The notes below the pieces were generated by a model. That model did no database searches. It was not told the origin of the DNA and saw only the letters and a list, made by a program, of their open reading frames with translations. The position numbers were made by a program, and so were the translations under genes. A stretch of DNA of 64,000 bases from Mantamonas sphyraenae STR306. Taxonomy: Eukaryota; Protista; CRuMs. Below are positions 50,852-64,000 of this stretch, one piece after another (position 1 is the first letter of the stretch; the number at the start of each line of letters is the position of its first letter). Location of the stretch: positions 204,548 to 268,547 of the forward strand of contig JAPMXV010000033.1 of assembly GCA_026936335.1 (NCBI GenBank). Direction: 5' to 3'.

Positions 50852-52327
50852 TCACATGTCGCGCTCGACGACAATGGACCAGTCGGGGCGTTCGATCTCG
50901 CCGTACTGGATGCCGGTGATGGTGTCGAGGAAGCGGTGTGTGAGGTCGCCTGCGTTGAGCTCGGGGTTGATGGGCACGTCGTACTTGACGCCCTGGTAGG
51001 TGATGGACTCGATGGGGCACACGACGCAGGCGGTGCCTGCGCCAAAGGACTCGATGAGACGGCCCTGTTCAGAGGCGTCGACGAGCTCCTTCATGGTAAA
51101 GGCACGCTCGGTGACCTTGAACTCACCCCACTCACGGGAGAGGTCGAGGATACTGGAGCGGGTGACGCCCGGGAGGATGGTGCCGTCGAGGGGCGGGGTG
51201 ATGAGCTCCTTGTCGCCGTCCTCGTTGGTCCAAAAGACAAACATGTTCATGGTGCCGACCTCTGTGATTTCATCGTCGCCTTGCTTGTTCTTGAGGAGCC
51301 AGAGGATCTGCTGGGCACCCTGCTTGGCAGCCTGCTGCTGGGCAAGGATGGTCGGGCCGTAGTTGCCGCCGAGCTTGTAGTGGCCGACGCCGCCGGGCCA
51401 AGCACGGACCATGTCGCTGGTGGCGAGGAGGTTGACGGGCTTGAAGCCCTGGGCAAAGTAGGGCCCCACGCTGCTCTGGATGACAAAGATCTTTGCGCGG
51501 CTGCTGGCGGCAACGCCGAGAGAGGCGTCTGTGCCGATGGCAGTGGGGCGGAGGTAGAGGGAGTAGCCCTTCTTCTGCGGGATCCACTTGTGGTCGACGC
51601 GCAGGAGCTCCTTCATGCAGTTGAGCAGCTCTTCGCCGTTGAAACCAGGGAGAGCGAGGCGCTGCATCGACGTGTTCATGCGCCGCATGTTGTCCATGGG
51701 GCGGAAGAGGCGGATGGTGCCCTCGGCGTCCTTGTAGGCCTTCATGCCCTCGAAGCACTGGTCGGGTGGGATGGACGGTGGCGTGGGGGAGGAGGGCGTG
51801 TGAGTGCGAAGTGGCAAGGGAAGCAGTTTTTTACCAAAAAAACGGGGAAGCTGGCAAGCGAGGATTCGGGAAACGTCACACGGAAGGTTTTCTCCAAAAA
51901 GGCGATGGCGGACGACGCACCTCGATGCCATAGTGCAGGACGACTGTGGCAGGATCCATAGGCATGGGGCCGTACGGGTGGATGCGCGGTGCACCCCATG
52001 CACCGTCGGCAAAGTCGACCTCGAGCATGTGGTCGGTAAAGGTTTTGCTGGGAACGGGGTGTGTGAGTGAGAGAGGAGGGAGAAGAAGGGGAAGGGGAAG
52101 AGGAAGAGTGGATTGGGAGGAGGGAGGGCTTACCCAAACTGCAGCTTCTCCAGGGGCAGCATAGTCTTTGGGTTCTCGGTGAGAGAGACGGTGAGATCTG
52201 CGCTGCGGATGTCGTTCTCTGGGGCCAGCGAGGCGTAGGTGCGTGCAGAGGAGACGGCCAGGTTGGCCACAGTCTTTGCGGTGGTGTGGGTGGTGGTGGT
52301 GGTGGTGGTGGAGAAGCGGGAAAACAT
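50852..52327 (-). CDS. BCAT: Branched-chain amino acid aminotransferase (class IV PLP), probably mitochondrial. Exons 52327-52134, 52047-51921, 51757-50852
   Basis: FGKTFTDHML, LHYGIECFEGMKAY, LYLRPT, YKLGGNYGP (PLP Lys), ITEVGTMN, ILPGVTR, FGAGTA; N-terminal MFSRFS... presequence-like. Confidence 0.96.
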
Positions 52328-52371
52328 GGTCTTTTTGCTTGGAGGGGGGGGGGGGGTGGGGGTCACATCCT

Positions 52372-53907
52372 TCATGTGGACACACAGAGCTTGTCGAGCG
52401 TCTTTGCAAGTGAGGAGATGACTGTGGGCAGTTTGTGGAGGGTGTGCTTGGCGACGAGGCTGTCGATGCGGCTGGTGGCGATGACGGCTTTGCCGAGAAG
52501 GGCTTTGCCAGTGACGTGTAGGAAGCAGGTGGAAGCGACGGTGGTGAGGGTAGCGTGATGGTGTGTGAGGAGGTCGAGGGCTTGTGTGTGTTTGTTGGAG
52601 GAGGAGGAGGAGGAGGAGGAGGAGGCGCGTGCGCGGAGAGTGTCGATGGCGTGTTGGTGTTGAGCGAGGGTGCGAAGGATCTGCTTGGCTATGCTGGTGA
52701 GGTCGTCGCCAGGAAACAGCGTGCGGTGTTGGATCGAGTCGTCGGGGAGGTCGGGTTCGCCGAGGAGGCGCCAGCAGCAGGCAACGGGATGGTAGAGGGA
52801 GACATAGTCGGGGTCAAAGAGAGTTGGGTCGGCAATGCATCGGTGGGTATGGACAAGGAGAGGAAAAGTGTCGAGGGGGAGAGAGGACGGGTCGATGTGA
52901 CCGTGGGCGAGAGAGTCGCGGAGGCGCGGGCCATCGGGGAGCTGGAAGAGGTCCAGGAGGGCTGTAAAGAGAGGGATGCCAAGTGTGGTGAGGAGGGCGT
53001 TGTCGTCGTGTGGGCTCAGCATTTCCTCCATGGTGAGGAAGCTTGTGTGCATGACGGCGACGGCGCGGTCGGGTGTGTCGTTGACAGCGCAGTAGCAGAG
53101 ACGTAAGTGTTGCTCAAGAAGAGGCATGATGGTGACGGAGGCTGCGTGAGTGTCGCCGGCATCGTAGAGGGCGCAGGCGTGGAGAAAGGCGTCGTCGGGG
53201 AGCGTGGAGAGCGCGGACGGGAGCTCGGGGACGGGCCAGGGCGGGAGATCGACGGTGGCAGTTGGAGATATCCTGTCGGGGAGGTGGGCATGGACGGAGG
53301 CGAGAAGGAGGAGGAGAAATGGAGTCCAGGAGTCGGACCACCAGGAGGGGTCGGCGAAACCGTGCCATGCGATGTTGCGCAAGTTGAGGCCCAGGTGGGA
53401 GCCGACAGAGGCTTGGATGCAGAGAAGGAGGGGCTGGGGTAGCTTTTTGGCGAGATGGGGGCCTGTGAGGAGGTCTGTGAATCCTTTGTGCGACTTTGTG
53501 TGGGCCAGGGCGACGAGTGCGGCCTCGAGCTCGGCAGAGATGATGAGGGCGGCAAGGATGTGATGCGAGTCCTGGAGGTGGGTGAGGGCAGTGGTGAAGG
53601 GAGCCAGAGAGTCGAGGGAGGCGACGATGTCGTCGGAGAGGGAGTCTGCAAGGTAGAGGCAGGCGTGCGCGAGCGGGTGCATGATGGAGGTGGTTTCAGA
53701 GCGGGTAGAGAGGTCTGGTGGAAGGGAGGTGAGGTCGAGGGCGGCGGCAAAGGCCTCGGGAGGGAGGAGGAGAGCGGGCGGGGATTGGTTCATGTCGAGG
53801 AGCGGGTCGGGGGGCAGGGAGGAGACGAAGCGGTCGAGGGACGGTGTGGAGGATGGGTGTGGAGAGGAGAGGATGAGGGTGGAGACGTCATCGTGGAGGT
53901 TGGACAT
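52372..53907 (-). CDS. ERMARD: ERMARD (C6orf70)/DUF4209-like protein
   Basis: GLNLRNIAWHGF, LLEQHLRLCYCAVN and DGPRLRDSLAHG match motifs recalled for this family. Start is uncertain (MSNLHDD at 53907). Confidence 0.72.
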   Translation of the reverse strand: MSNLHDDVSTLILSSPHPSSTPSLDRFVSSLPPDPLLDMNQSPPALLLPPEAFAAALDLTSLPPDLSTRSETTSIMHPLAHACLYLADSLSDDIVASLDSLAPFTTALTHLQDSHHILAALIISAELEAALVALAHTKSHKGFTDLLTGPHLAKKLPQPLLLCIQASVGSHLGLNLRNIAWHGFADPSWWSDSWTPFLLLLLASVHAHLPDRISPTATVDLPPWPVPELPSALSTLPDDAFLHACALYDAGDTHAASVTIMPLLEQHLRLCYCAVNDTPDRAVAVMHTSFLTMEEMLSPHDDNALLTTLGIPLFTALLDLFQLPDGPRLRDSLAHGHIDPSSLPLDTFPLLVHTHRCIADPTLFDPDYVSLYHPVACCWRLLGEPDLPDDSIQHRTLFPGDDLTSIAKQILRTLAQHQHAIDTLRARASSSSSSSSSNKHTQALDLLTHHHATLTTVASTCFLHVTGKALLGKAVIATSRIDSLVAKHTLHKLPTVISSLAKTLDKLCVST

Positions 53908-54055: not shown

Positions 54056-56038
54056 ATGAGTGGGCGGGGTGCAAAAGTTGAACCCGAGTTGACGGGACGT
54101 GGGCCGTCCTGGGTCGCGCGCGAAGTGGAAAGAGGCACAGAGAGTGTGCGTGCAAAGATTGCCAATGGCTATGTGGCAGTGGTGGACTGGGTGGAGAATC
54201 TGGGGTTCAGAAAGGTGGGGTTGAGCGTGGACGACAATCCGTACGCGACGACGCAGTACGAGGAGCTCGCTGTGCTGGATGACACGGACATGGCGTGGAA
54301 GTTGAAGTTTTCAGTGCACAAGAAACGTTTCTTGCAGTCAGACGTGACAGAGACGACGCTACTGCGGTCGGAGCTGGAGACGATTCGGAAAACACACCGC
54401 CACCTCCCAGGGGCGGTTGGCATGAAGCTCATGACTTGGAGGAGGTCTGTTTTGTGCGGCGCCGTGTTGTTCATGTTGGTCAGCGTGGGGTTTGCGACAT
54501 CGCTGGCCGCGGACGCGGTGGACGAGGCGCAGGCAAATGTTCTTCGATTTCCGCCGAGGTACAGGGCCTCAGTGCAGGGGATGGCGGATCTCATCGCGTT
54601 CTCAAAGATTGTGTACACCGCAAGCTTGTATCCGACGCTGCTGTTGTTTATGATTGGCGCGTGCACGTGGAACAGGTACGGCGTTTCTCGGGGATTTGTC
54701 TGGGCCGCCTTCTTGGTGAGCGTGCTTGTTCCGTTCGTGGTGTATTTGGTCGTGCCATTCCGCTCGGGCGTGGACATGGAGGCGGTGGCGCAGCAGGTGT
54801 GTCGCGATGCGATGGGTGGTGTGGATGGGGGACCTGGGCTGGAGGACTTGTACGAAGCATCCGCGACGCTGAGAGGGAAGTTTCCAAACGGGGTGTGTTT
54901 GAAAACACCAGATGAGTGGGCAGCAACACTGAAGAAGCCTTTATTGGATGCAGGGGTGGCGCCGTTTGGAAACGGATCGTGCCCGTTGGCGATGGAGAGT
55001 TCGCACAACTCGTCGACAGGGGCAAATGGGGCAGCCGGGTCCTGCAGAGCGTGTGCACCGTGCTTTACGGAACCTTGCTTACTTGCACGCGGTCTGTTGG
55101 AGGCTGGGGCAGACAATGCGACGGTGGCTGCGTCGTTTCCACAGTGTGGGCCGAATTGCACAGCGTGCGTGGTCGATTGCAGAAGCGCCTACAAAGGGCA
55201 AGTGAACGCATTTGTGCAAGCGCAGCAATCATGTGTGGACGGCGCTGTGTGGCTGGTTTTGGAGGCTGTGGAGGTGGCTGCCGCAAATCACGAAGCGGCT
55301 GGGTTTTTGGTGGGCATTTATGGGGCGACGGAGGCACTTCGGACGCTGCTGCCGATCACCATGTCGCTGCTTACGGGTTCTTTGCGTGGCAACAAGGTGG
55401 CAAAGAATCTGCTGACATGGAGCAGGCTCAGCGGCTTCACGCTGATTTTGAACGCGATGGCGTCGCTTCCGTTCATGCTGGTTGGGCTTGCGGGGTTGTA
55501 CCAGTTGTCGGGCAGTGCTGCAGTGCTGCTCATGAATGTGTGCTTGGTGCTGAGCGTGGTCGTGTGGCTGTTTGCAGGGTCGCAGCTGACGGACGCCAAA
55601 CCACACAAAACGACGAAGCAGACATTGAGCATCGTGTCACTGGTGTCGAATCTCATGAGACTGCTGGCGTTGTTGTTTGGGCTGGCTTGGGTGACACAGA
55701 GTGACCTGTTGCTGAGCCAGCTGAGCGAGCTGTCGGCGGATCAAGGGCGCGTGGTCGATCTGCTCGTGCAGAAACTCACGGACTACTTTGGCAAAGCAAC
55801 ATTGACTGCGGTGGCGTACGTGGATTTCTCATTGTACATGAACGTGCGTGTGCATCACGCAGATGAGCACGATCGGAAAGACGTCGCTTTGCTTCGGGAT
55901 CAACTTCTGGACGACCTGGAGACGCTAACGGAGTTGGGCAGGGATGTTCGTGTGGAGTGGGAGGATGACGGGGGTGACACGGTGCGTGTGAGGAATTTCG
56001 GGCAGGGTGGGGAGTTGGCGGACGAGCAGGGAAGGTGA
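54056..56038 (+). CDS. Uncharacterised multi-pass membrane protein with a large Cys-rich loop (660 aa)
   Basis: Single ORF with about 7-8 hydrophobic segments; loop CRACAPCFTEPC...CGPNCTACVVDC with N-glycosylation sequons. Confidence 0.75.
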   Translation: MSGRGAKVEPELTGRGPSWVAREVERGTESVRAKIANGYVAVVDWVENLGFRKVGLSVDDNPYATTQYEELAVLDDTDMAWKLKFSVHKKRFLQSDVTETTLLRSELETIRKTHRHLPGAVGMKLMTWRRSVLCGAVLFMLVSVGFATSLAADAVDEAQANVLRFPPRYRASVQGMADLIAFSKIVYTASLYPTLLLFMIGACTWNRYGVSRGFVWAAFLVSVLVPFVVYLVVPFRSGVDMEAVAQQVCRDAMGGVDGGPGLEDLYEASATLRGKFPNGVCLKTPDEWAATLKKPLLDAGVAPFGNGSCPLAMESSHNSSTGANGAAGSCRACAPCFTEPCLLARGLLEAGADNATVAASFPQCGPNCTACVVDCRSAYKGQVNAFVQAQQSCVDGAVWLVLEAVEVAAANHEAAGFLVGIYGATEALRTLLPITMSLLTGSLRGNKVAKNLLTWSRLSGFTLILNAMASLPFMLVGLAGLYQLSGSAAVLLMNVCLVLSVVVWLFAGSQLTDAKPHKTTKQTLSIVSLVSNLMRLLALLFGLAWVTQSDLLLSQLSELSADQGRVVDLLVQKLTDYFGKATLTAVAYVDFSLYMNVRVHHADEHDRKDVALLRDQLLDDLETLTELGRDVRVEWEDDGGDTVRVRNFGQGGELADEQGR

Positions 56039-56143: not shown

Positions 56144-59100
56144 TCATTCGAGACGTTGGCGTTAGGAGGAGGAGGAGGAGGAAGGGTCTTTGCGCTTGGG
56201 GAGGGTGAAGGAGGGGATGGGGTAGGCGTTGACGAGTGCAGGGGTGGTGGGGCGGGTGTTGATGTGGGGTGTGATGCGGTCGATGAGGGTGTGGAGGAGG
56301 GTGTGCAGTGTGGCGTCGCTGGGTTTGGGGTTGTCGAGCCAGGCGATCTTGAGGGAGAGGGAGGTGACACCGCGGGTGAGGGTGGCGCTGACGGCAGGTT
56401 GCACCTTCTTGTAGGTGAGGCGTGGCCTGAGGAGGCGAACAAAGAAGGCCAGGTCGACAGGCGGCACGCCAACGTTGCCCAGCGCCAGGATGATGTGTCG
56501 CACCAGGGATTTCAGGTCGCCGTTGTTGACCAGTTCCCGCAGTGCCTGGTGCTCGTGTGTGTGCTGATGGCGAGGGTGCTTGGCTGCGCGTGCCTTCATG
56601 TGTGCCAGCAGCGTCTGGAACTCCCGCGCCGTGCAGCTGCCACGCTCGTCTGCGGATGTGTTCCAGCCACTGCGTACAGACTCAGGATGCCACTTTTCCA
56701 CCTTGGTGGTGGTGAGGTGGTGGTCGTAGTCGCATTGTGTCCAGTGTGGGTCGCTGTCGTTGTCAGCAGGGCGTCGTGCTTTCTGCAGCCACAGCTGGGT
56801 CTGCTCGTACTCCTTCCAGCTGGTGGGATGGGGACTGTTGTCGAGAGTGTCCATCTCTGTCATGATCAGGTGGAGGAGGGCGTAGTTGGGGTCGCCGTGG
56901 TCGTGTGGCTCCTCCAGCCAGCACACCTTCAACCCAGCCTTTGTCACACCTATGGCCAGACCAGCGTGGATGATGGCAGAGATGCACGAATGTTGATCCA
57001 TGTCACGACCGAGAAGGGTGAGGCAGAAGGCCATGTCGCCCTGGGAGAGGGGAATGTTGCCCAGAGCGAGCTGAATCTGTCGGACAAGCGTGTTCAGGGT
57101 GCCATGGCAGACCATAACACGCGCCTGCAGGGTCATGAGGTCCGAGATGTCGTCGATGGGATGCTCGTTGGCCAGGGTGTACATGTGGTTCAGCAGTGCC
57201 GTGTGCTCCTTCTTGTTGCTGTGGCTGCGCTCGTTCCTGCGCCAGGTTTTCCAGCCACTGCACACAACGCCATCTGGCAGTCCATCCTCCACGTCCATCA
57301 TCTCCTCCTCCTGATGGGCTTGGGCAGAACAAGCTTATGGATGTCGAGGACATTTACGGCGTCGTGGTGGTGGATCGGGTGGTGATGTGGGGTGTGATGC
57401 GGTCGATGAGGGTGTGGAGGAGAGGGTGTGCAGTGTGGCGTCGCTGGGTTGGGGTTTGTCGAGCCAGGCGATCTTGAGGGAGAGGGAGGTGACGCCGCGG
57501 GTGAGGGTGACGCTGATGGCATTTTTCACCTGCTGGTAGGTGAGGCGTGGCCTGAGGAGGCGGACAAAGAAGGCCAGGTCGACAGGCGGCACGCCAACGT
57601 TGCCCAGCGCCAGGATGATGTGTCGCAGCAGGGACAGCTGGCTGCCGTTGTTGATCAGCTCACGCAGTGCCTGTTGCTCGTGTGCGTGCTGATGGCGAGG
57701 GTGCTTGGCTGCGCGTGCCTTCATGTGTGCCAGCAGCGTCTGGAACTCCCGCGCCGTGCAGCTGCCACGCTCGTCGCTGGTTCTGGCACTGCTCCAGCCA
57801 CTGCGCACAGACTCAGGATGCCACTTGTCCACCTTGGTGGTGGTGAGGTGGTGGTCGTAGTCGCATTGTGTCCAGTGTGGGTCGCTGTCGTTGTCAGCAG
57901 GGCGTCGTGCTTCCTGCAGCCACAGCTGGGTCTGCTCGTGCTCCTTCCAGGTGGTGGGATGGGTCTGTCGCCAAGAGTGTCCATCTCTGTCATGAGCAGG
58001 TGGAGGAGGGCGTAGTTGGGGTCGCCGTGGTCGTGTGGCTCCTCCAGCCAGCACACCTTCAACCCAGCCTTTGTCACACCCACGGCCAGACCAGCGTTGA
58101 TGATGGATGCACTCCATGCCTTTTGATCCATGTCATGGCCGAGAAGGGTGAGGCAGAGGGCCATGTCGCCCTGGGAGAGGGGAATGTTACCCAGAGCGAG
58201 CTGAGTCTGTCGGACGAGCGTCACCAGGGTGCCATGGCAGACGACAATACGCGCATGCAGGGTCATGAGGTCTGGGATATTGTCGATGGGATGCTCGGAG
58301 GCCAGGGTGCGCATGTGCTTCAGCAGTGCCGTGTGCTCCTTCTTGTTGCAGTGACTGCGCTCGTCACTGCAGTTGTGCGACCACCCTTTGCGCACAACAC
58401 CATCTGGCAACATGCTCGTCTTGTCCACGCCTGATTTCTTCCGTGCGCCGGTGTCTCCGTTCTCGGCCCTCCTTGCCCGTGTGCTTGACGTTCCTGTCTC
58501 TGTGCCACTGCCAGCCGCGACCCCGAGCCTGTGCTGTCCGGTGCCTTTCATCTTTTGTGAACCAGCATGTCGACTGGTGTGGCCTCTGCGTTGTTGTGTG
58601 CGGGCTCTACATGTGCGCGTCGGCTGCCATTCGTCCGTGTCTTCCTGCTCCATGTCGTCTGTGTCGTCGTCGCTGTCGTCTTGCGGCATGTGCTCCTCAT
58701 CCATGGCATCACCAGTTTCTGCAATGCTGAGTGCACCCTGAGTTTCCAACTCGTCGTCCACGTGCTGCTGGGTTGCGTCGTTTGCCTCGTCGTCTTCTTC
58801 GTACGCCTCCATTCCTGAGCTGGTCATCCACTCTGTGTTGCTGGAGGGTGACCGTGGTTCTTGATGGCCAAAGTTCAGGAACATCAAATCCTCCACGTCG
58901 CCGGTGTCATGTGTGTGTGTGTCTTGGTGTGCGTCGTCGGCGTCGCTGTCTCCAGTCTGCCGTGTGGCCTGGTGGGACGAGAACGACGATGTGGTGGTGG
59001 AAGTGGTCCGTGTGATGCCGACAAAGGCAGGGCTGATGCGTTTGGGGACGCGGTTGTGGTTTGTGGTGGGTTGAGCAGGCGGAGGGTGCAACGGAGGCTG

Positions 59101-59313
59101 AGCGAAGTGCATCTGGGCGGTTTGTCGCGGCTGAGGAGGCGGCGGAGGAGGGTAGGCGTAGTATGGATGGCCCTGATGAGCATATGCGTGGTGCTGCTGA
59201 GCACGGATGTTGACAGGGACCCAGATGATGGGTGGTTGTGGGTGGTACGGGTTTTGTACGCCAGAGGCGGGCAGCATGTTCGGAAACGGCTGGGCAGCCA
59301 TGGGAGGGACCAT
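56144..59313 (-). pseudogene. Subtelomeric repeat-domain gene, copy B (frameshifted; ORF pieces 59313-57721, 58117-57335, 57301-56162)
   Basis: Colinear with ORF 63187-59618. Indels near 57961, 57420 and 57370-57310; TAA in place of AAA at 56164-56162. May be partly assembly error. Confidence 0.7.
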
Positions 59314-60009
59314 GTACGCGTAGCTGTGGGGAGAAGGGGAGGAGCAGGGTGGGGTTGGAACGGTGAGCGGAAGGCGGAATGGACGCCGTCAGGGCACAAG
59401 CGGGGGTGAAGGGAGGCTGGAGCGAGCAAAGAGGGGAAAACGAAGGAGATTGGCAGACCGAGAAACTGGCAACGGGGAGGGCAGTGACAGGGGAGACGGG
59501 ATCGGAGAAGAGCGGAGAAGGCAGCAGCGGTGGTGATGGGAAAGTGGAGATGCAGAAGAGGAGTGCAGGGAAGCGACGGAAGCATGGAGGAGGCAAGGAA
59601 GTGGGAGAAGCGGGCAGTCAGAAAACGGAGTGGAAGGCAGAACGCACGCTGGGTAGGAGTTGGGTGTGTGTTGTCGCTTCGGAGTGCTTGGATAGTCTTT
59701 GTCCATGGTGGTGGTGGTGGTACTGGGGTGTATGTGGATTGTGTTGGACTGGTGGAGGGTGTTGTGGGTGTTGGGGATATTTTGGTTGAAGGCGGATGGG
59801 TGGGGTGCACAGGTGGATGAGGCGATGGAGGTGGCGTTGGTGATGAATGGGGAGGAGAAGGAAGCGATGTTTGAGTGTGGTGGGATGGAGGAGTATGTGG
59901 AGGAGAGAGGATGGGGAGGGTGGGTGACACTGCCAGATGAGGTGATAGAGAGGGTGATTGGGTGCGGAGGAGAGGGTGAGTGGTAAGGGTGTGGGAATGA
60001 AGGGGTGGT

Positions 60010-63000
60010 TCATTCGAGGCGCTGGCGTTTGGAGGGAGGAGGAGGAGGAGGAGGAAGGGTCTTTGCGCTTGGGGAGGGTGAACGAGGGGATGGGGTAGGC
60101 GTTGACGAGTGCGGTGGTGGTAGGGCGGGTGGTGATGTGGGGTGTGATGCGGTCGATGAGGGTGTGGAGGAGGGTGTGCAGTGTGGTGTCGCTGGGTTTG
60201 GGGTTGTCGAGCCAGGCGATCTTGAGGGAGAGGGAGGTGACACCGCGGGTGAGGGTGAGGCTGATGGCACTTTGCACCTGTTGGTAGGTGAGTTGTGGCC
60301 TGAGGAGGCGGACAAAGAAGGCCAGGTCGACGGGCGGCACGCCAACGTTGCCCAGCGCCAGGATGATGTGTCGCACCAGGGGCCTCAGGCTGCCGTTGTT
60401 GATCAGTTCACGCAGTGCCTGGAGCTCGTGTGCGTGCTGATGGCGAGGGTGCTTGGCTGCGCGTGCCTTCATGTGTGCCAGCAGCGGCCGGAACTCCCGC
60501 GCAGTGCAGCTGCCACGCTCGTCGTGGTTGGATGCGTCCCAGCCACTGCGAACAGACTCAGGGTGCCACTTGTCCACCTTGGCTGTGGCGAAGTGGTGGT
60601 CGTAGTCGCATTGTGCCCAGTGTGGGTCGCTGTCGTTGTCAGCAGGGCGTCGTGCTTCCTGCAGCCACAGCTGGGTCTGCTTGTGCTCCTTCCAGGTGGT
60701 GGGATGGGGCCTGTCGCCGAGAGTGCCCATTTCTGTCATGAGCAGGTGGAGGAGGGCGTAGTTGGGGTCGCCGTGGTCGTGTGGCTCCTCCAGCCAGCAT
60801 ACCTTCAACCCAGCCTTTGTCACCCCCATGGCCAGCCCAGCGTCATTGATGGCACTGCTGCACGCATGTTGATCAATATCACGGCCGAGAAGAGTGAGGC
60901 AGAGGGCCATGTCGCCCTGGGAGAGGGGAATGTTGCCCAGAGCGAGCTGAATCTGTCGGACGAGCGTCAACAGGGTGCCATGGCAGACCACAACACGCGC
61001 CTGAAGGGCCATGAGGTCTGGGATGTCGTCGATGGCATGCTCATTGGCCAGGGTGTGCATGTGGTTCAGCAGTGCCGTGTGCTCCTTCTTGTTGCTGTGG
61101 CTGCGCTCGCTTTTGCGCCAGAATGTCCAGCCACTGCGCACAACGCCATCTGGCAGTCCATCCTCCACGGCCATCTTCTCCTCCTCTGTTTGCTCAGGCA
61201 GAACAAGCTCGGTGATGCGTAGGGTGTTGACTGCGTCAACGGTGGTGGGACGGGTGGTGATGCGGGGTGTGATGCGGTCGATGAGGGTGTGGAGGAGGGT
61301 GTGCAGTGTGGCGTCGCTGGGTTTGGGGTTGTCGAGCCAGGCGATCTTGAGGGAGAGGGAGGTGACGCCACGAGCGAGGGATTTGCTGATGGCAGGTTGC
61401 ACCTTCTTGTAGGTGAGGTGTGGCCTGAGGAGGCGGACAAAGAAAAACAGGTCGACAGGCGGAAGGCCAACGTTGCCCAGCGTCAGCATGATGTGTCGCA
61501 GCAGAGACTTCAGGCTGCCGTTGTTGATCAGCTCACGCAGTGTCTGGTTCTCGTGTGTGAGCTGATGGCGACGGTGCTTGGCTGCGCGTGCCTTCATATG
61601 TGCCAGTAGCGTCTGGAACTCCCGTGCCGTGCAGCTGCCTCGCTCGTCGCTGGGGGTGGCACTGCTCCAGCCACTGCGCACAGACTCAGGACGCCACTTG
61701 TCCACCTTGGTGGTGGTGAGGTGGTGGTCGTAGTCGCATTGTGTCCAGTGTGGGTCGCTGTCGTTGTCAGCAGGGCGTCGTGCTTGCTGCAGCCACAGCT
61801 GGGTTTGCTTGTGCTCCTTCCAGCTGGTGGGATGGGGTCTGTCGCCAAGAGTGTCCATCTCTGTCATGAGCAGGTGGAGAAGGGCGTAGTTGGGGTCGCC
61901 GTGGTCGTGTGGTTCCTCCAGCCAGCACACCTTCAACCCAGCCTTGGTCACACCCATGGCCAGACCAGCGTCGCGGATGGCACAGCTGCACGCCACTTGA
62001 TCCACATCTCGGCCGAGAAGGGTGAGGCAGAGGGCCATGTCGCCCTGGGAGAGGAGAATGTTGCCCAGAGTGAGCTGAATCTGTCGGATCAGCGTGTTCA
62101 GGGTGCCATGGCAGACCAAAACACGCGCCTGCAGGGTCATGAGGTCGGGCATGTCTTCGATGCGATGCTCGTTGGCCAGGGTGTGCATGTGGTTCAGCAG
62201 TGCCGTGTGCTCCTTCTTGTTGCTGTGGCTGCGGTCGTCACTAGGTCCCATTTTCCACCCTTTGCGAACAACTCCATCTGGCAACTTGTTCGTCTTGTCC
62301 ACGCCTGATTTCTTCCGTGCGCTGGTGTCTCCGTTCTTGGCCCTCCTTGCCCGTGTGCTCGACGTTCCTGTCTCTGTGCCACTGCCAGCCGTGACCCTGA
62401 GCCTGCGCTGTCCGCTGCCATTCATCTTCTGTGTACCAGTACGATGGCTGGCGTGGTTTCTTCGTCGAGTGTGGCCTCCTCTTGTGCGTCTCGGCTGCCA
62501 TTCGTCCGTGTCCTCCTGTTCGATGTCGTCTGTGTCGTCGTCGCTGTCATCTTGCGGCAGGTACTCCTCAACCATGAAATCACCAGTTTCTGCAATGCTG
62601 AGTGTGCCCTGAGTTTCCATCTCGTCGTCCACATGCTGCTGGGTTGCGTCGTTTGCCTCGAGGTCTTCTTCGTACGCCTCCATCCTTGAGCTGGTCATCC
62701 ACTCTGGGTTGCTGAAGATTGACCGTGGTTCACGGTGGCCAAAGTTCAGCACCATCAGGTCCTCCACGTCGCCAGTGTCATGTGTGCGTGTGTCCTGGTC
62801 TGCGTCGTCGGCGTCGCAGTCTCCAGTCTGGCGTGTGACCTGGTGGGAGGAGGACGACGATGTGGTGGTGGATGTAGTCCGTGTGATGCCGACAAAGGCA
62901 GGGCTGATGCGTTTCGGGACGCGGTTGTGGTTTGTGGTGGGTTGAGCAGGTGGAGGGTGAAACGGAGGCTGAGCGAAGTGCATCTGGGCGGTTTGTCGCG

Positions 63001-63187
63001 GCTGAGGAGGCGGAGGAGGAGGGTAGGCGTAGTATGGGTGGCCCTGATGAGCATATGCGTGGTGCTGCTGGAGGTGGGTGTTGACAGGGACCCAGATGAT
63101 GGGTGGTTGTGGATGCTGGTACGGGTTTTGTACGCCTTGGACGGGCAGCATGTTCGGAAACGGCTGGGCAGCCATGGGAGGGACCAT
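60010..63187 (-). CDS. Subtelomeric repeat-domain gene, copy A: P/Q/H-rich, acidic and basic N-terminus followed by four homologous ~190-aa repeats (A-B-A-B); true stop probably at 60010
   Basis: ORF 63187-59618 with an internal ~1.13-kb duplication. One extra C at ~60034 diverts the ORF from the ...SKRQRLE* ending shared with copy B. Confidence 0.75.
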
Positions 63188-63845
63188 GTACGCGTAGCTG
63201 TGGGGACACGGGGAGGGGCAAGGCAGGGTGGGAACGGTGAGCGGAAGGCGGAATGGACGCCGTCAGGGCAGAAGCGGGGGGTGAACGGGAGGCTGGAACG
63301 AGCAAAGAGGGAAAACGGAGGAGATTGGCAGACCGGGAAACTGGCAACGGGGAGGGCAGTGACATGGGAGAGGGGATCGGAGAAGAGCGGAGAAGGCAGA
63401 AACGGTGGTGATGGGGAAGTGGAGATGCAGGGGAGGAGTGCAGGGAAGCGACGGAGGCATGAAGGAGGGAAGGAAGCGGGAGAAGCGGGCAGTCAGAAAA
63501 CGGAGTGGAAGGCAGAACGCACGCTGGGTAGGTGTTGGGTGTGTGTTGTTGCTTCGGAGTGCTTGAGTAGTATTTGTCCATGGTGGTGGTGGTGGTACTG
63601 GAGTGTATGTGGATTGTGTTGGACTGGTGGAGGGTGTTGTGGGTGTTGGTGATACTTTGGTTGAAGGCGGATGGGCAGTGCTGACTGCGCGGCGTTGCAA
63701 GACGACGGCCACTCACAAGCGACATTTCCACTCCCACCCATTGCCCACTGCCCCATGTCACCACCCAACTCAGCCACACGCCAGCAAACACAAGCACAAC
63801 TCACTTGATATACACCGGAATCACCACACCCATGATAACAGACAT

Positions 63846-64000
63846 TTAGGGTTAGAGTTAGGGTTAGGGCTTAGGGATAGGGTTAGGGTTAGGGTTAGGG
63901 TTAGGGTTAGGGTTAGGGTTAGGGTTAGGGTTAGGGTTAGGGTTAGGGTTAGGGTTAGGGTTAGGGTTAGGGTTAGTTAGGGTTAGGGTTAGGGTTAGGG
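63846..64000 (+). repeat. Telomere (TTAGGG)n with degenerate proximal units
   Basis: Perfect TTAGGG array to the window end; variants TTAGAG (63852), CTTAGGG (63870), ATAGGG (63877), TTAG (63973). Confidence 0.99.

Follow-up and report, generated by a model that had tools for sequence, protein, structure and literature searches.

The vertebrate KRAB zinc-finger proteins (KRAB-ZFPs) form a lineage-specific repertoire of tandem reader modules, in which the scaffold is constant and the DNA-contacting positions are positively selected, and which has grown by duplication and conversion (PMC5363842). At the chromosome ends of Magnaporthe, the TLH gene lies in a common core adjoining the telomere repeat at 11 of 14 ends, is intact in only four of those 11 cases, and has spread by recombination (PMC1635262). 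Here we consider a gene family of the deep-branching protist flagellate Mantamonas sphyraenae STR306 that invites comparison with both, starting from a 64,000-nucleotide stretch of contig JAPMXV010000033.1 (positions 204,548 to 268,547 of the forward strand, assembly GCA_026936335.1), which we call the window. On its minus strand, at 56144-63187, a 3.7-kb unit occurs twice in tandem next to a TTAGGG array, with 90% nucleotide identity between the copies, each encoding an N-terminal region followed by four modules in the order A-B-A-B (N-A-B-A-B). The two copies with this layout and their A and B motifs had been recognised in a sequence-only reading of the window and are indeed present there; that reading took them for a gene pair, and they are instead one end of a genome-wide family.

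The M. sphyraenae assembly has 25.06 Mb in 78 contigs, 59 of them telomeric at both ends and 14 at one, giving ~132 telomeric ends (PMC10492846), and our searches covered 25,061,354 bases in the 78 contigs. Candidate places numbered 408 for the AB unit, 746 for the module profile, 197 for the N-terminus and 166 for the upstream DNA, counts that would correspond to a family of about 170-200 genes. A family copy occurs on the plus strand at ~66 left ends and on the minus strand at ~63 right ends, together ~129 of the ~132 telomeric ends, as tallied by hand from scored matches, with 18 of the 63 right ends checked against contig size and the others presumed from position and strand. At all 20 left ends that were read directly the unit adjoins the CCCTAA array and reads inward, the distance from ATG to telomere being typically 650-680 nt (~665) with two exceptions (771 and 1316 nt). 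Homology between ends ceases 0-220 nt past the stop codon, and chromosome-specific genes usually come next. Tandem copies are found at some ends, and the module number varies (AB, ABAB, ABABAB, longer); one end (L009) carries a fused gene of the form N-AB..-partial N-ABAB. The clear exception to end position is a cluster of very long open reading frames (ORFs) of the family, 1902, 2172 and 3224 aa in length, which lies internally at C29:75600-103900 and is partly inverted. Since a biofilm metagenome of a different study contains pieces of the family at 85-95% identity, the family is no artefact of the assembly. The genome paper masked repeats before gene prediction and makes no mention of subtelomeric genes (PMC10492846), so that the family is probably absent from the annotation, and our literature searches found no published description of it. 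An architecture of this kind, in which ~98% of telomeric ends carry one gene that is intact, expressed and diversifying, is undescribed.

A typical gene has two exons and encodes ~1080 aa, usually with four modules of ~145-190 aa each. In 26 of 26 copies, a predicted 59-nt exon 1 in strong Kozak context lies upstream of exon 2, followed by an invariant GTGCGT donor, an intron of 319-330 nt and an AG acceptor, with the phase kept. In the window, the telomere-proximal copy (copy A) had been proposed to start ~660 bp from the telomere and to read away from it; the orientation holds and an ATG at 63187 is found 659 nt inward of the TTAGGG array, but this ATG belongs to exon 2 and the gene very probably starts in the upstream exon at 63581, as predicted from sequence conservation. 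The P/Q/H-rich, acidic and basic blocks of the N-terminus are real. The usual protein end is KRKDP(S)nKRQRLE-stop, and this basic, bipartite tail is a probable nuclear localisation signal (NLS). The A and B modules do align with each other, at ~30% consensus identity, with the common motifs G-W, E..L..H, L.R..L.LGN, GVT..LK..WL and L.H. Since every copy carries the intron on the sense strand, spread through RNA is argued against. Neither poly(A) nor a telomere-like 3' tail was found in the units examined, nor was a terminal inverted repeat, the end-to-end inverted alignment scoring 20, at chance level.

Sequence searches used exon-2 parts, exon 1 with its 19 codons being too short to search, and the libraries searched did not return this genome's own copies, so that the blanks reported here cover indexed sequences only, among which there are no other Mantamonas transcriptomes. 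Pfam (ORF and 80 modules) and the PDB profile search gave no match; word searches found no relatives of the AB unit or of region 300-680 of the full-length protein; a hidden Markov model (HMM) run against 1.84 billion representative proteins matched nothing, and neither did ESM Atlas features or scans of metagenome and viral contigs, the Atlas folds staying at a template-modelling (TM) score of 0.36 or below. The description of an unrecognised domain without reverse transcriptase, integrase or transposase similarity stands, and so does that of a lineage-specific subtelomeric family. Specifically, Pfam gave no KRAB domain, no C2H2 array and no SF2/RecQ helicase domain, there is no P-loop, and no Myb telobox or oligonucleotide-binding (OB) fold matched in Pfam or the PDB.

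The fold matches are to the winged helix-turn-helix (wHTH). An AlphaFold run on 80 single modules produced a seven-helix domain (predicted local distance difference test, pLDDT, 72.5; predicted TM score, pTM, 0.72), and one on 70 AB units produced the succession helix-strand-helix-helix-hairpin (H1-S-H2-H3-S-S) in A and B alike, that is, a three-helix bundle followed by a beta-hairpin wing, with no profile similarity to any named wHTH family. In a structural search with the AB model, 50 of the 50 top rows were winged helices, aligned over residues 58-126 and 248-329, led by F-93 (Z 6.3) and the Hop2 winged helix (Z 6.1, root-mean-square deviation 1.8 A, 60 of 64 residues) and including Fur, MecI, forkhead and histone H5; the single-module model returned a similar list at Z 3-4. 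Foldseek had no match at E <= 0.001, its best rows being mostly MarR-type. No single match is significant alone, and the assignment is made because the top matches are unanimous and the fold was recovered independently in A and B. We therefore predict, with modest confidence, that each module holds a winged-helix core, which together with the bipartite basic C-terminus agrees with the nuclear-type character that the proteins had been given from sequence.

Selection acts on these proteins in two ways: it is purifying on the scaffold and diversifying on one face of helix 3, on the first turn of helix 1 of the winged helix and on the N-terminal loop. Overall dN/dS, the ratio of nonsynonymous to synonymous change, is 0.53-0.61 among 18 full-length copies. 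Over 71 AB units, the corresponding polymorphism ratio, pN/pS, is 0.2-0.5 in the wing, helix 2 and the first helices, ~1.0 on average in helix 3 and ~1.2-1.3 in the loop after G-W. A site model flagged positions 12, 63, 97, 101 and 104 in A and 208, 210, 243, 247, 259, 293, 296, 297 and 301 in B, with omega 5.6-6.4; the flagged sites fall at the same structural positions in A and B, and those in helix 3 lie on one face. Sites 97/101/104 and 296/297/301 (i, i+4, i+7 spacing) each show 10-13 different residues and 2.5-3.1 bits. With neutral codons at the observed synonymous diversity and free recombination, 2.4 bits occurs in <=0.07% of sites (P <= 0.0007), against 2.5-3.1 at the seven gap-free helix sites. 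The variable helix sites hold mostly Q, L, N, H, K, R, D and S, with 69% R/K/N/Q/H/S/T/D and 1.3% aromatic residues, and 64 of 71 A and 68 of 71 B helix signatures are unique.

No linkage is seen among the copies past 30 nt (r2 ~0.016), median identity is 89%, and pairs from the same locus are no closer; because linkage vanishes and the copies are almost equidistant, they are mosaics and tree-based p-values are invalid. Accordingly, the M2a-versus-M1a likelihood ratios (353 and 459) are unusable as p-values, simulations without positive selection under free recombination having given 79-277, and a count of codons with both positions variable failed the same control; we rely instead on the per-site entropy and on the higher omega, 5.6-6.4 as against 2.2-2.8 in the control. 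A scheme of nested duplications, from domain to AB to ABAB to gene pair, keeps its first step, the common origin of A and B, and loses the rest to varying module number and mosaicism. The second AB units of L017 and L020 (C52 right, C74 left) are 99.2% identical compared to the 89% median, which points either to an exchange in the recent past between ends that are not homologous or to a haplotype in the assembly.

In sequencing run X4, a contig skips the 163-nt GT-AG intron of the neighbouring aminotransferase gene, with zero depth within the intron; we infer from this splicing that the run is poly(A) RNA. In the same run the element has a summed depth of 23,000-63,000, near its value in DNA run X2, and each site is represented by dozens of variant contigs; the neighbours of the element have depths of 10-34. 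Many paralogs thus appear to be present in RNA, the contigs being informative of presence and not of level, strand or copy. Altogether we found no confident match to a known domain or transposon, no copies scattered without telomere bias, and no silence coupled with neutral dN/dS (the RNA run type being inferred and dN/dS non-neutral), the outcomes on which the sequence-only reading had staked its proposal.

We favour the view that the first gene slot at nearly every chromosome end is filled by a multigene family of the host whose products are modular, nuclear readers of sequence. The disordered P/Q/H-rich and acidic N-terminus would probably be the effector or partner-recruiting part. Ectopic recombination between chromosome ends at the DNA level would keep the copies alike and at the same time shuffle them, a mechanism suggested by the observed mosaicism and intron retention, and would yield ~170-200 expressed proteins, nearly every one with its own set of putative base-contacting residues. 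Most probably these would serve to recognise many different and fast-changing DNA sequences, viral or selfish DNA for example, and to mark them for silencing or regulation, as the vertebrate KRAB zinc-finger arrays do. We give roughly even chances to the combination of nuclear location, putative DNA binding by helix 3 and a role in defence or regulation directed at DNA targets that change. More tentatively, the family might represent a hitherto unknown kind of natural DNA-binding protein that can be re-targeted, made of winged-helix chains with a helix-3 residue code, kept as a library, with at least one gene per telomere, that end recombination diversifies, serving sequence-specific genome defence and possibly coupled to nuclease-bearing relatives; this larger proposal we would sooner doubt than accept.

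Several points weigh against this view. The A modules are net acidic (13 K+R vs 18 D+E), the wing is absent in the single-module model, the AB model has a mean pLDDT of 56, and a structural Z of ~6 falls short of what the search tool itself treats as comfortable. The winged-helix fold is known to bind proteins and RNA as well as DNA. The entropy test would lose force under targeted hypermutation, or if the local mutation rate were twice as high and the genealogy star-shaped (P 0.14 at theta 0.3). Finally, selection for diversity alone leaves unexplained why there is a copy at every end at a fixed distance.

The same selection data would fit a variable face that binds proteins, for example those of viruses or symbionts in the nucleus, in which case the family would be an intracellular immune repertoire like the leucine-rich repeat (LRR) and ankyrin genes often found next inward. 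In its favour, the inward neighbours frequently include LRR, ankyrin and HECT genes, several of the top fold matches are winged helices that do not bind DNA (cullin WHB, ELL N2), and the acidity of the A modules would be less awkward. However, the variable sites are nearly free of aromatic residues and rich in Q/N/H/K/R, unlike typical protein-binding paratopes, and they fall on the canonical recognition helix, so that we consider protein recognition unlikely.

The regularity of the ends themselves suggests another possibility, that a 3.9-kb selfish unit targeted to telomeres, or a drive element, spreads by DNA recombination, its protein serving the spread or a poison-antidote self-recognition, perhaps aided in trans by relatives that carry a nuclease. 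A single unit at nearly all ends with fixed spacing and orientation, a sharp inner border just past the stop codon, truncated remnants further inward and the very long internal relatives on C29 (open frames of 1902-3224 aa) would all be in keeping with it. Among the readings considered, it is the only one that would by itself explain the occupancy of every end, for which our default would be recombination-driven homogenisation of the terminal segment as in fungal TLH (PMC1635262). Against it stand the intron in all copies, the lack of poly(A), telomere-like 3' tail and terminal inverted repeat noted above, and an ORF without catalytic domain in a genome whose sole RVT_1 match is the telomerase gene TERT. 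Profile searches with XPG_N, XPG_I, XPG_I_2, Pox_G5 and 5_3_exonuc_N, the five nuclease Pfam profiles used, gave no match on C29, where a divergent domain would escape them. We judge a selfish origin improbable on this balance. Two particular forms were rejected: a telomeric non-LTR or Penelope-like retroelement, on the intron in 26 of 26 copies, the absence of a poly(A) or telomere-complementary 3' end and TERT as the only RVT_1 match (a genome search with RVT_2 was also blank, run without a positive control), and a DNA transposon, on the absence of a transposase domain match and the inverted-repeat score at chance.

A telomere-structural protein that binds TTAGGG or a conserved subtelomeric motif and caps or silences ends, as the sequence-only reading had entertained, would suit the universal telomere adjacency, the winged-helix fold and the probable NLS. 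The telomere repeat is invariant, though, and a protein that reads such a target would be expected to keep its recognition helix conserved, contrary to the diversification observed; moreover, there is no Myb or OB similarity, TERT is present, and the position of a gene does not imply the location of its protein. We find such a role unsupported and very unlikely. More improbable still is a chromosome-end barcode reader, in which each copy would recognise the spacer peculiar to its end, to pair homologues or to identify the end: every end does have a unique spacer of similar length (20-50 nt) and a near-unique helix signature, yet spacers and signatures do not covary (Mantel r 0.05, p 0.35, n=15; low power), and spacer diversity grades telomere-ward like ordinary terminal decay. 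A passive subtelomeric repeat without current function is hardly credible, for although dN/dS is only 0.5-0.6 and some copies, copy B of the window included, are broken, ~42 singleton stops would be expected and none is present in 18 full-length copies, 21 of 25 copies read without internal lesion before the tail (both counts partly circular), and splice phase is conserved, diversification focal and RNA present.

The layout in the window, with all gene features on the minus strand, is as follows. The TTAGGG array occupies 63846-64000 at the right end of the contig (C33), as read from the sequence and in line with PMC10492846. An end-specific spacer (63819-63845; 20-50 nt and near-random across ends) separates it from the conserved element start, spacer heterozygosity being ~0.7 distally and dropping toward the conserved motif. 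The conserved upstream or promoter region (63582-63818), with its 166 candidate copies genome-wide, opens with a CCGGTCTA-type motif that contains the donor-like word GTGAGT. Within 63690-63845 the sense strand is G/T-rich telomere-ward, and the skew between strands reverses near 63690, ~500 nt ahead of the ATG of exon 2, which is compatible with a bidirectional promoter yielding a telomere-ward (TERRA-like) transcript. Copy A has a predicted 59-nt exon 1 at 63523-63581 (MDKYYSSTPK..., with strong Kozak context; length and phase as in the other copies), a predicted 325-nt intron at 63198-63522 (GTGCGT...CAG) whose length varies among copies, and exon 2 at 60010-63197, with low-complexity N-terminus, modules A1-B1-A2-B2 and basic tail. 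Module A1 (61844-62284; predicted two helices, winged helix and C-terminal helix) contains the putative recognition helix 3 at 61970-61999, with hypervariable positions 97, 101 and 104; B1 (61259-61696) contains its helix 3 at 61379-61411, with hypervariable positions 293, 296, 297 and 301; A2 lies at 60716-61156 and B2 at 60134-60568. As assembled, the family stop at 60010 is out of frame, with a frame slip in a terminal TCC tract at ~60035 and the ORF continuing to 59618; apart from this slip, copy A shows no damage. The ~216-nt common 3' flank of copy A and then a truncated upstream region of copy B fill 59707-60009, a junction of a kind seen in tandems at other ends too. Copy B has predicted exon 1 at 59648-59706, a predicted 324-nt intron at 59324-59647 and exon 2 at 56144-59323, with A1 at 58410-57970, B1 at 57823-57390, A2 at 57280-56840 and B2 at 56692-56258. 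Its exon 2 is broken as assembled by frameshifts at ~57965, ~57424 and 57365-57311 and by a stop at 56162. The frameshifts in both copies may be real or polishing errors. An alternative genetic code was rejected, TAA at 56162 taking the place of a Lys codon in one copy only.

The last unique gene before the element (54056-56038, plus strand) encodes a protein of 660 aa that resembles multi-pass membrane proteins, contains a Cys-rich segment and matches nothing in Pfam. Further inward are a branched-chain aminotransferase gene (Aminotran_4; 50852-52375, minus strand) with introns, of which that at 51758-51920 is the one spliced in run X4, and a single 7418-aa ORF (17613-39869, plus strand) in which ankyrin repeats near the N-terminus are the only match of the first 3333 aa. 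At other ends, the next genes inward are often LRR, HSF-LRR, ankyrin or HECT genes (L024, L027, L029, L030 and L039, at 4-8 kb, and L025), and short second-tier blocks are common to a few ends. At the left end of C3, the element is followed by TERT (Telomerase_RBD and RVT_1; L023:6795-9557, minus strand) as the first unique gene, in convergent orientation. At L028:175-850, telomere and element are separated by an additional ~680 nt that open with a short tandem repeat. Two ends carry an ORF of 720-732 aa between the full element and a truncated B-module remnant (L028:6422-8581 and L031:5836-8031, plus strand), with P-loop-like and PD-(D/E)XK-like motifs, a Crinkler-type architecture by eye and no Pfam match.

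If the proteins do bind DNA, the family would offer a new modular scaffold for DNA recognition besides those of TALEs and zinc fingers, and its ~700 natural module variants might allow a code to be learned. It would also mean that a KRAB-ZFP-like logic evolved independently in a lineage near the base of Amorphea, and that a telomere-adjacent slot can generate diversity for a nuclear protein rather than for a surface antigen.

Irrespective of these prospects, the family matches none of the following systems in full. Like KRAB-ZFPs, PRDM9 and TALEs, it has tandem modules on a constant scaffold with selection focused on putative contact positions; unlike them, its modules are predicted winged helices of ~145-190 aa and not C2H2 or TALE repeats, KRAB and SET are lacking, binding is putative, A and B modules alternate, and there is one gene per telomere. 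With the winged-helix superfamily (MarR, Fur, forkhead, Hop2, histone H5, ORC WH) it shares predicted topology at structural Z 5-6.3, whereas identity is 4-21%, no profile matches, there are extra N- and C-terminal helices, and each chain holds four copies. Telomeric retroelements such as HeT-A/TART, Giardia GilM/GilT and Athena/terminons have their 5' end telomere-ward and form head-to-tail tandems, HeT-A doing so without an RT of its own; the family resembles them in orientation and tandems but keeps its sense-strand intron, lacks a poly(A) or telomere-like tail and gag/RT similarity, and has no partner RT besides TERT. The var and VSG genes are likewise subtelomeric with recombination-driven diversity, in contrast to which the family, with its basic NLS-like tail, has no surface-antigen architecture. 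DUX4/D4Z4 is a subtelomeric tandem DNA-binding gene, and to that extent similar, but it is a conserved homeodomain retrogene at few ends. Finally, the family is telomere-adjacent at many ends as are TLH and yeast Y', and differs from both in having no helicase motifs, in being mostly intact, in its focal diversifying selection and in its near-complete occupancy of ~130 ends.

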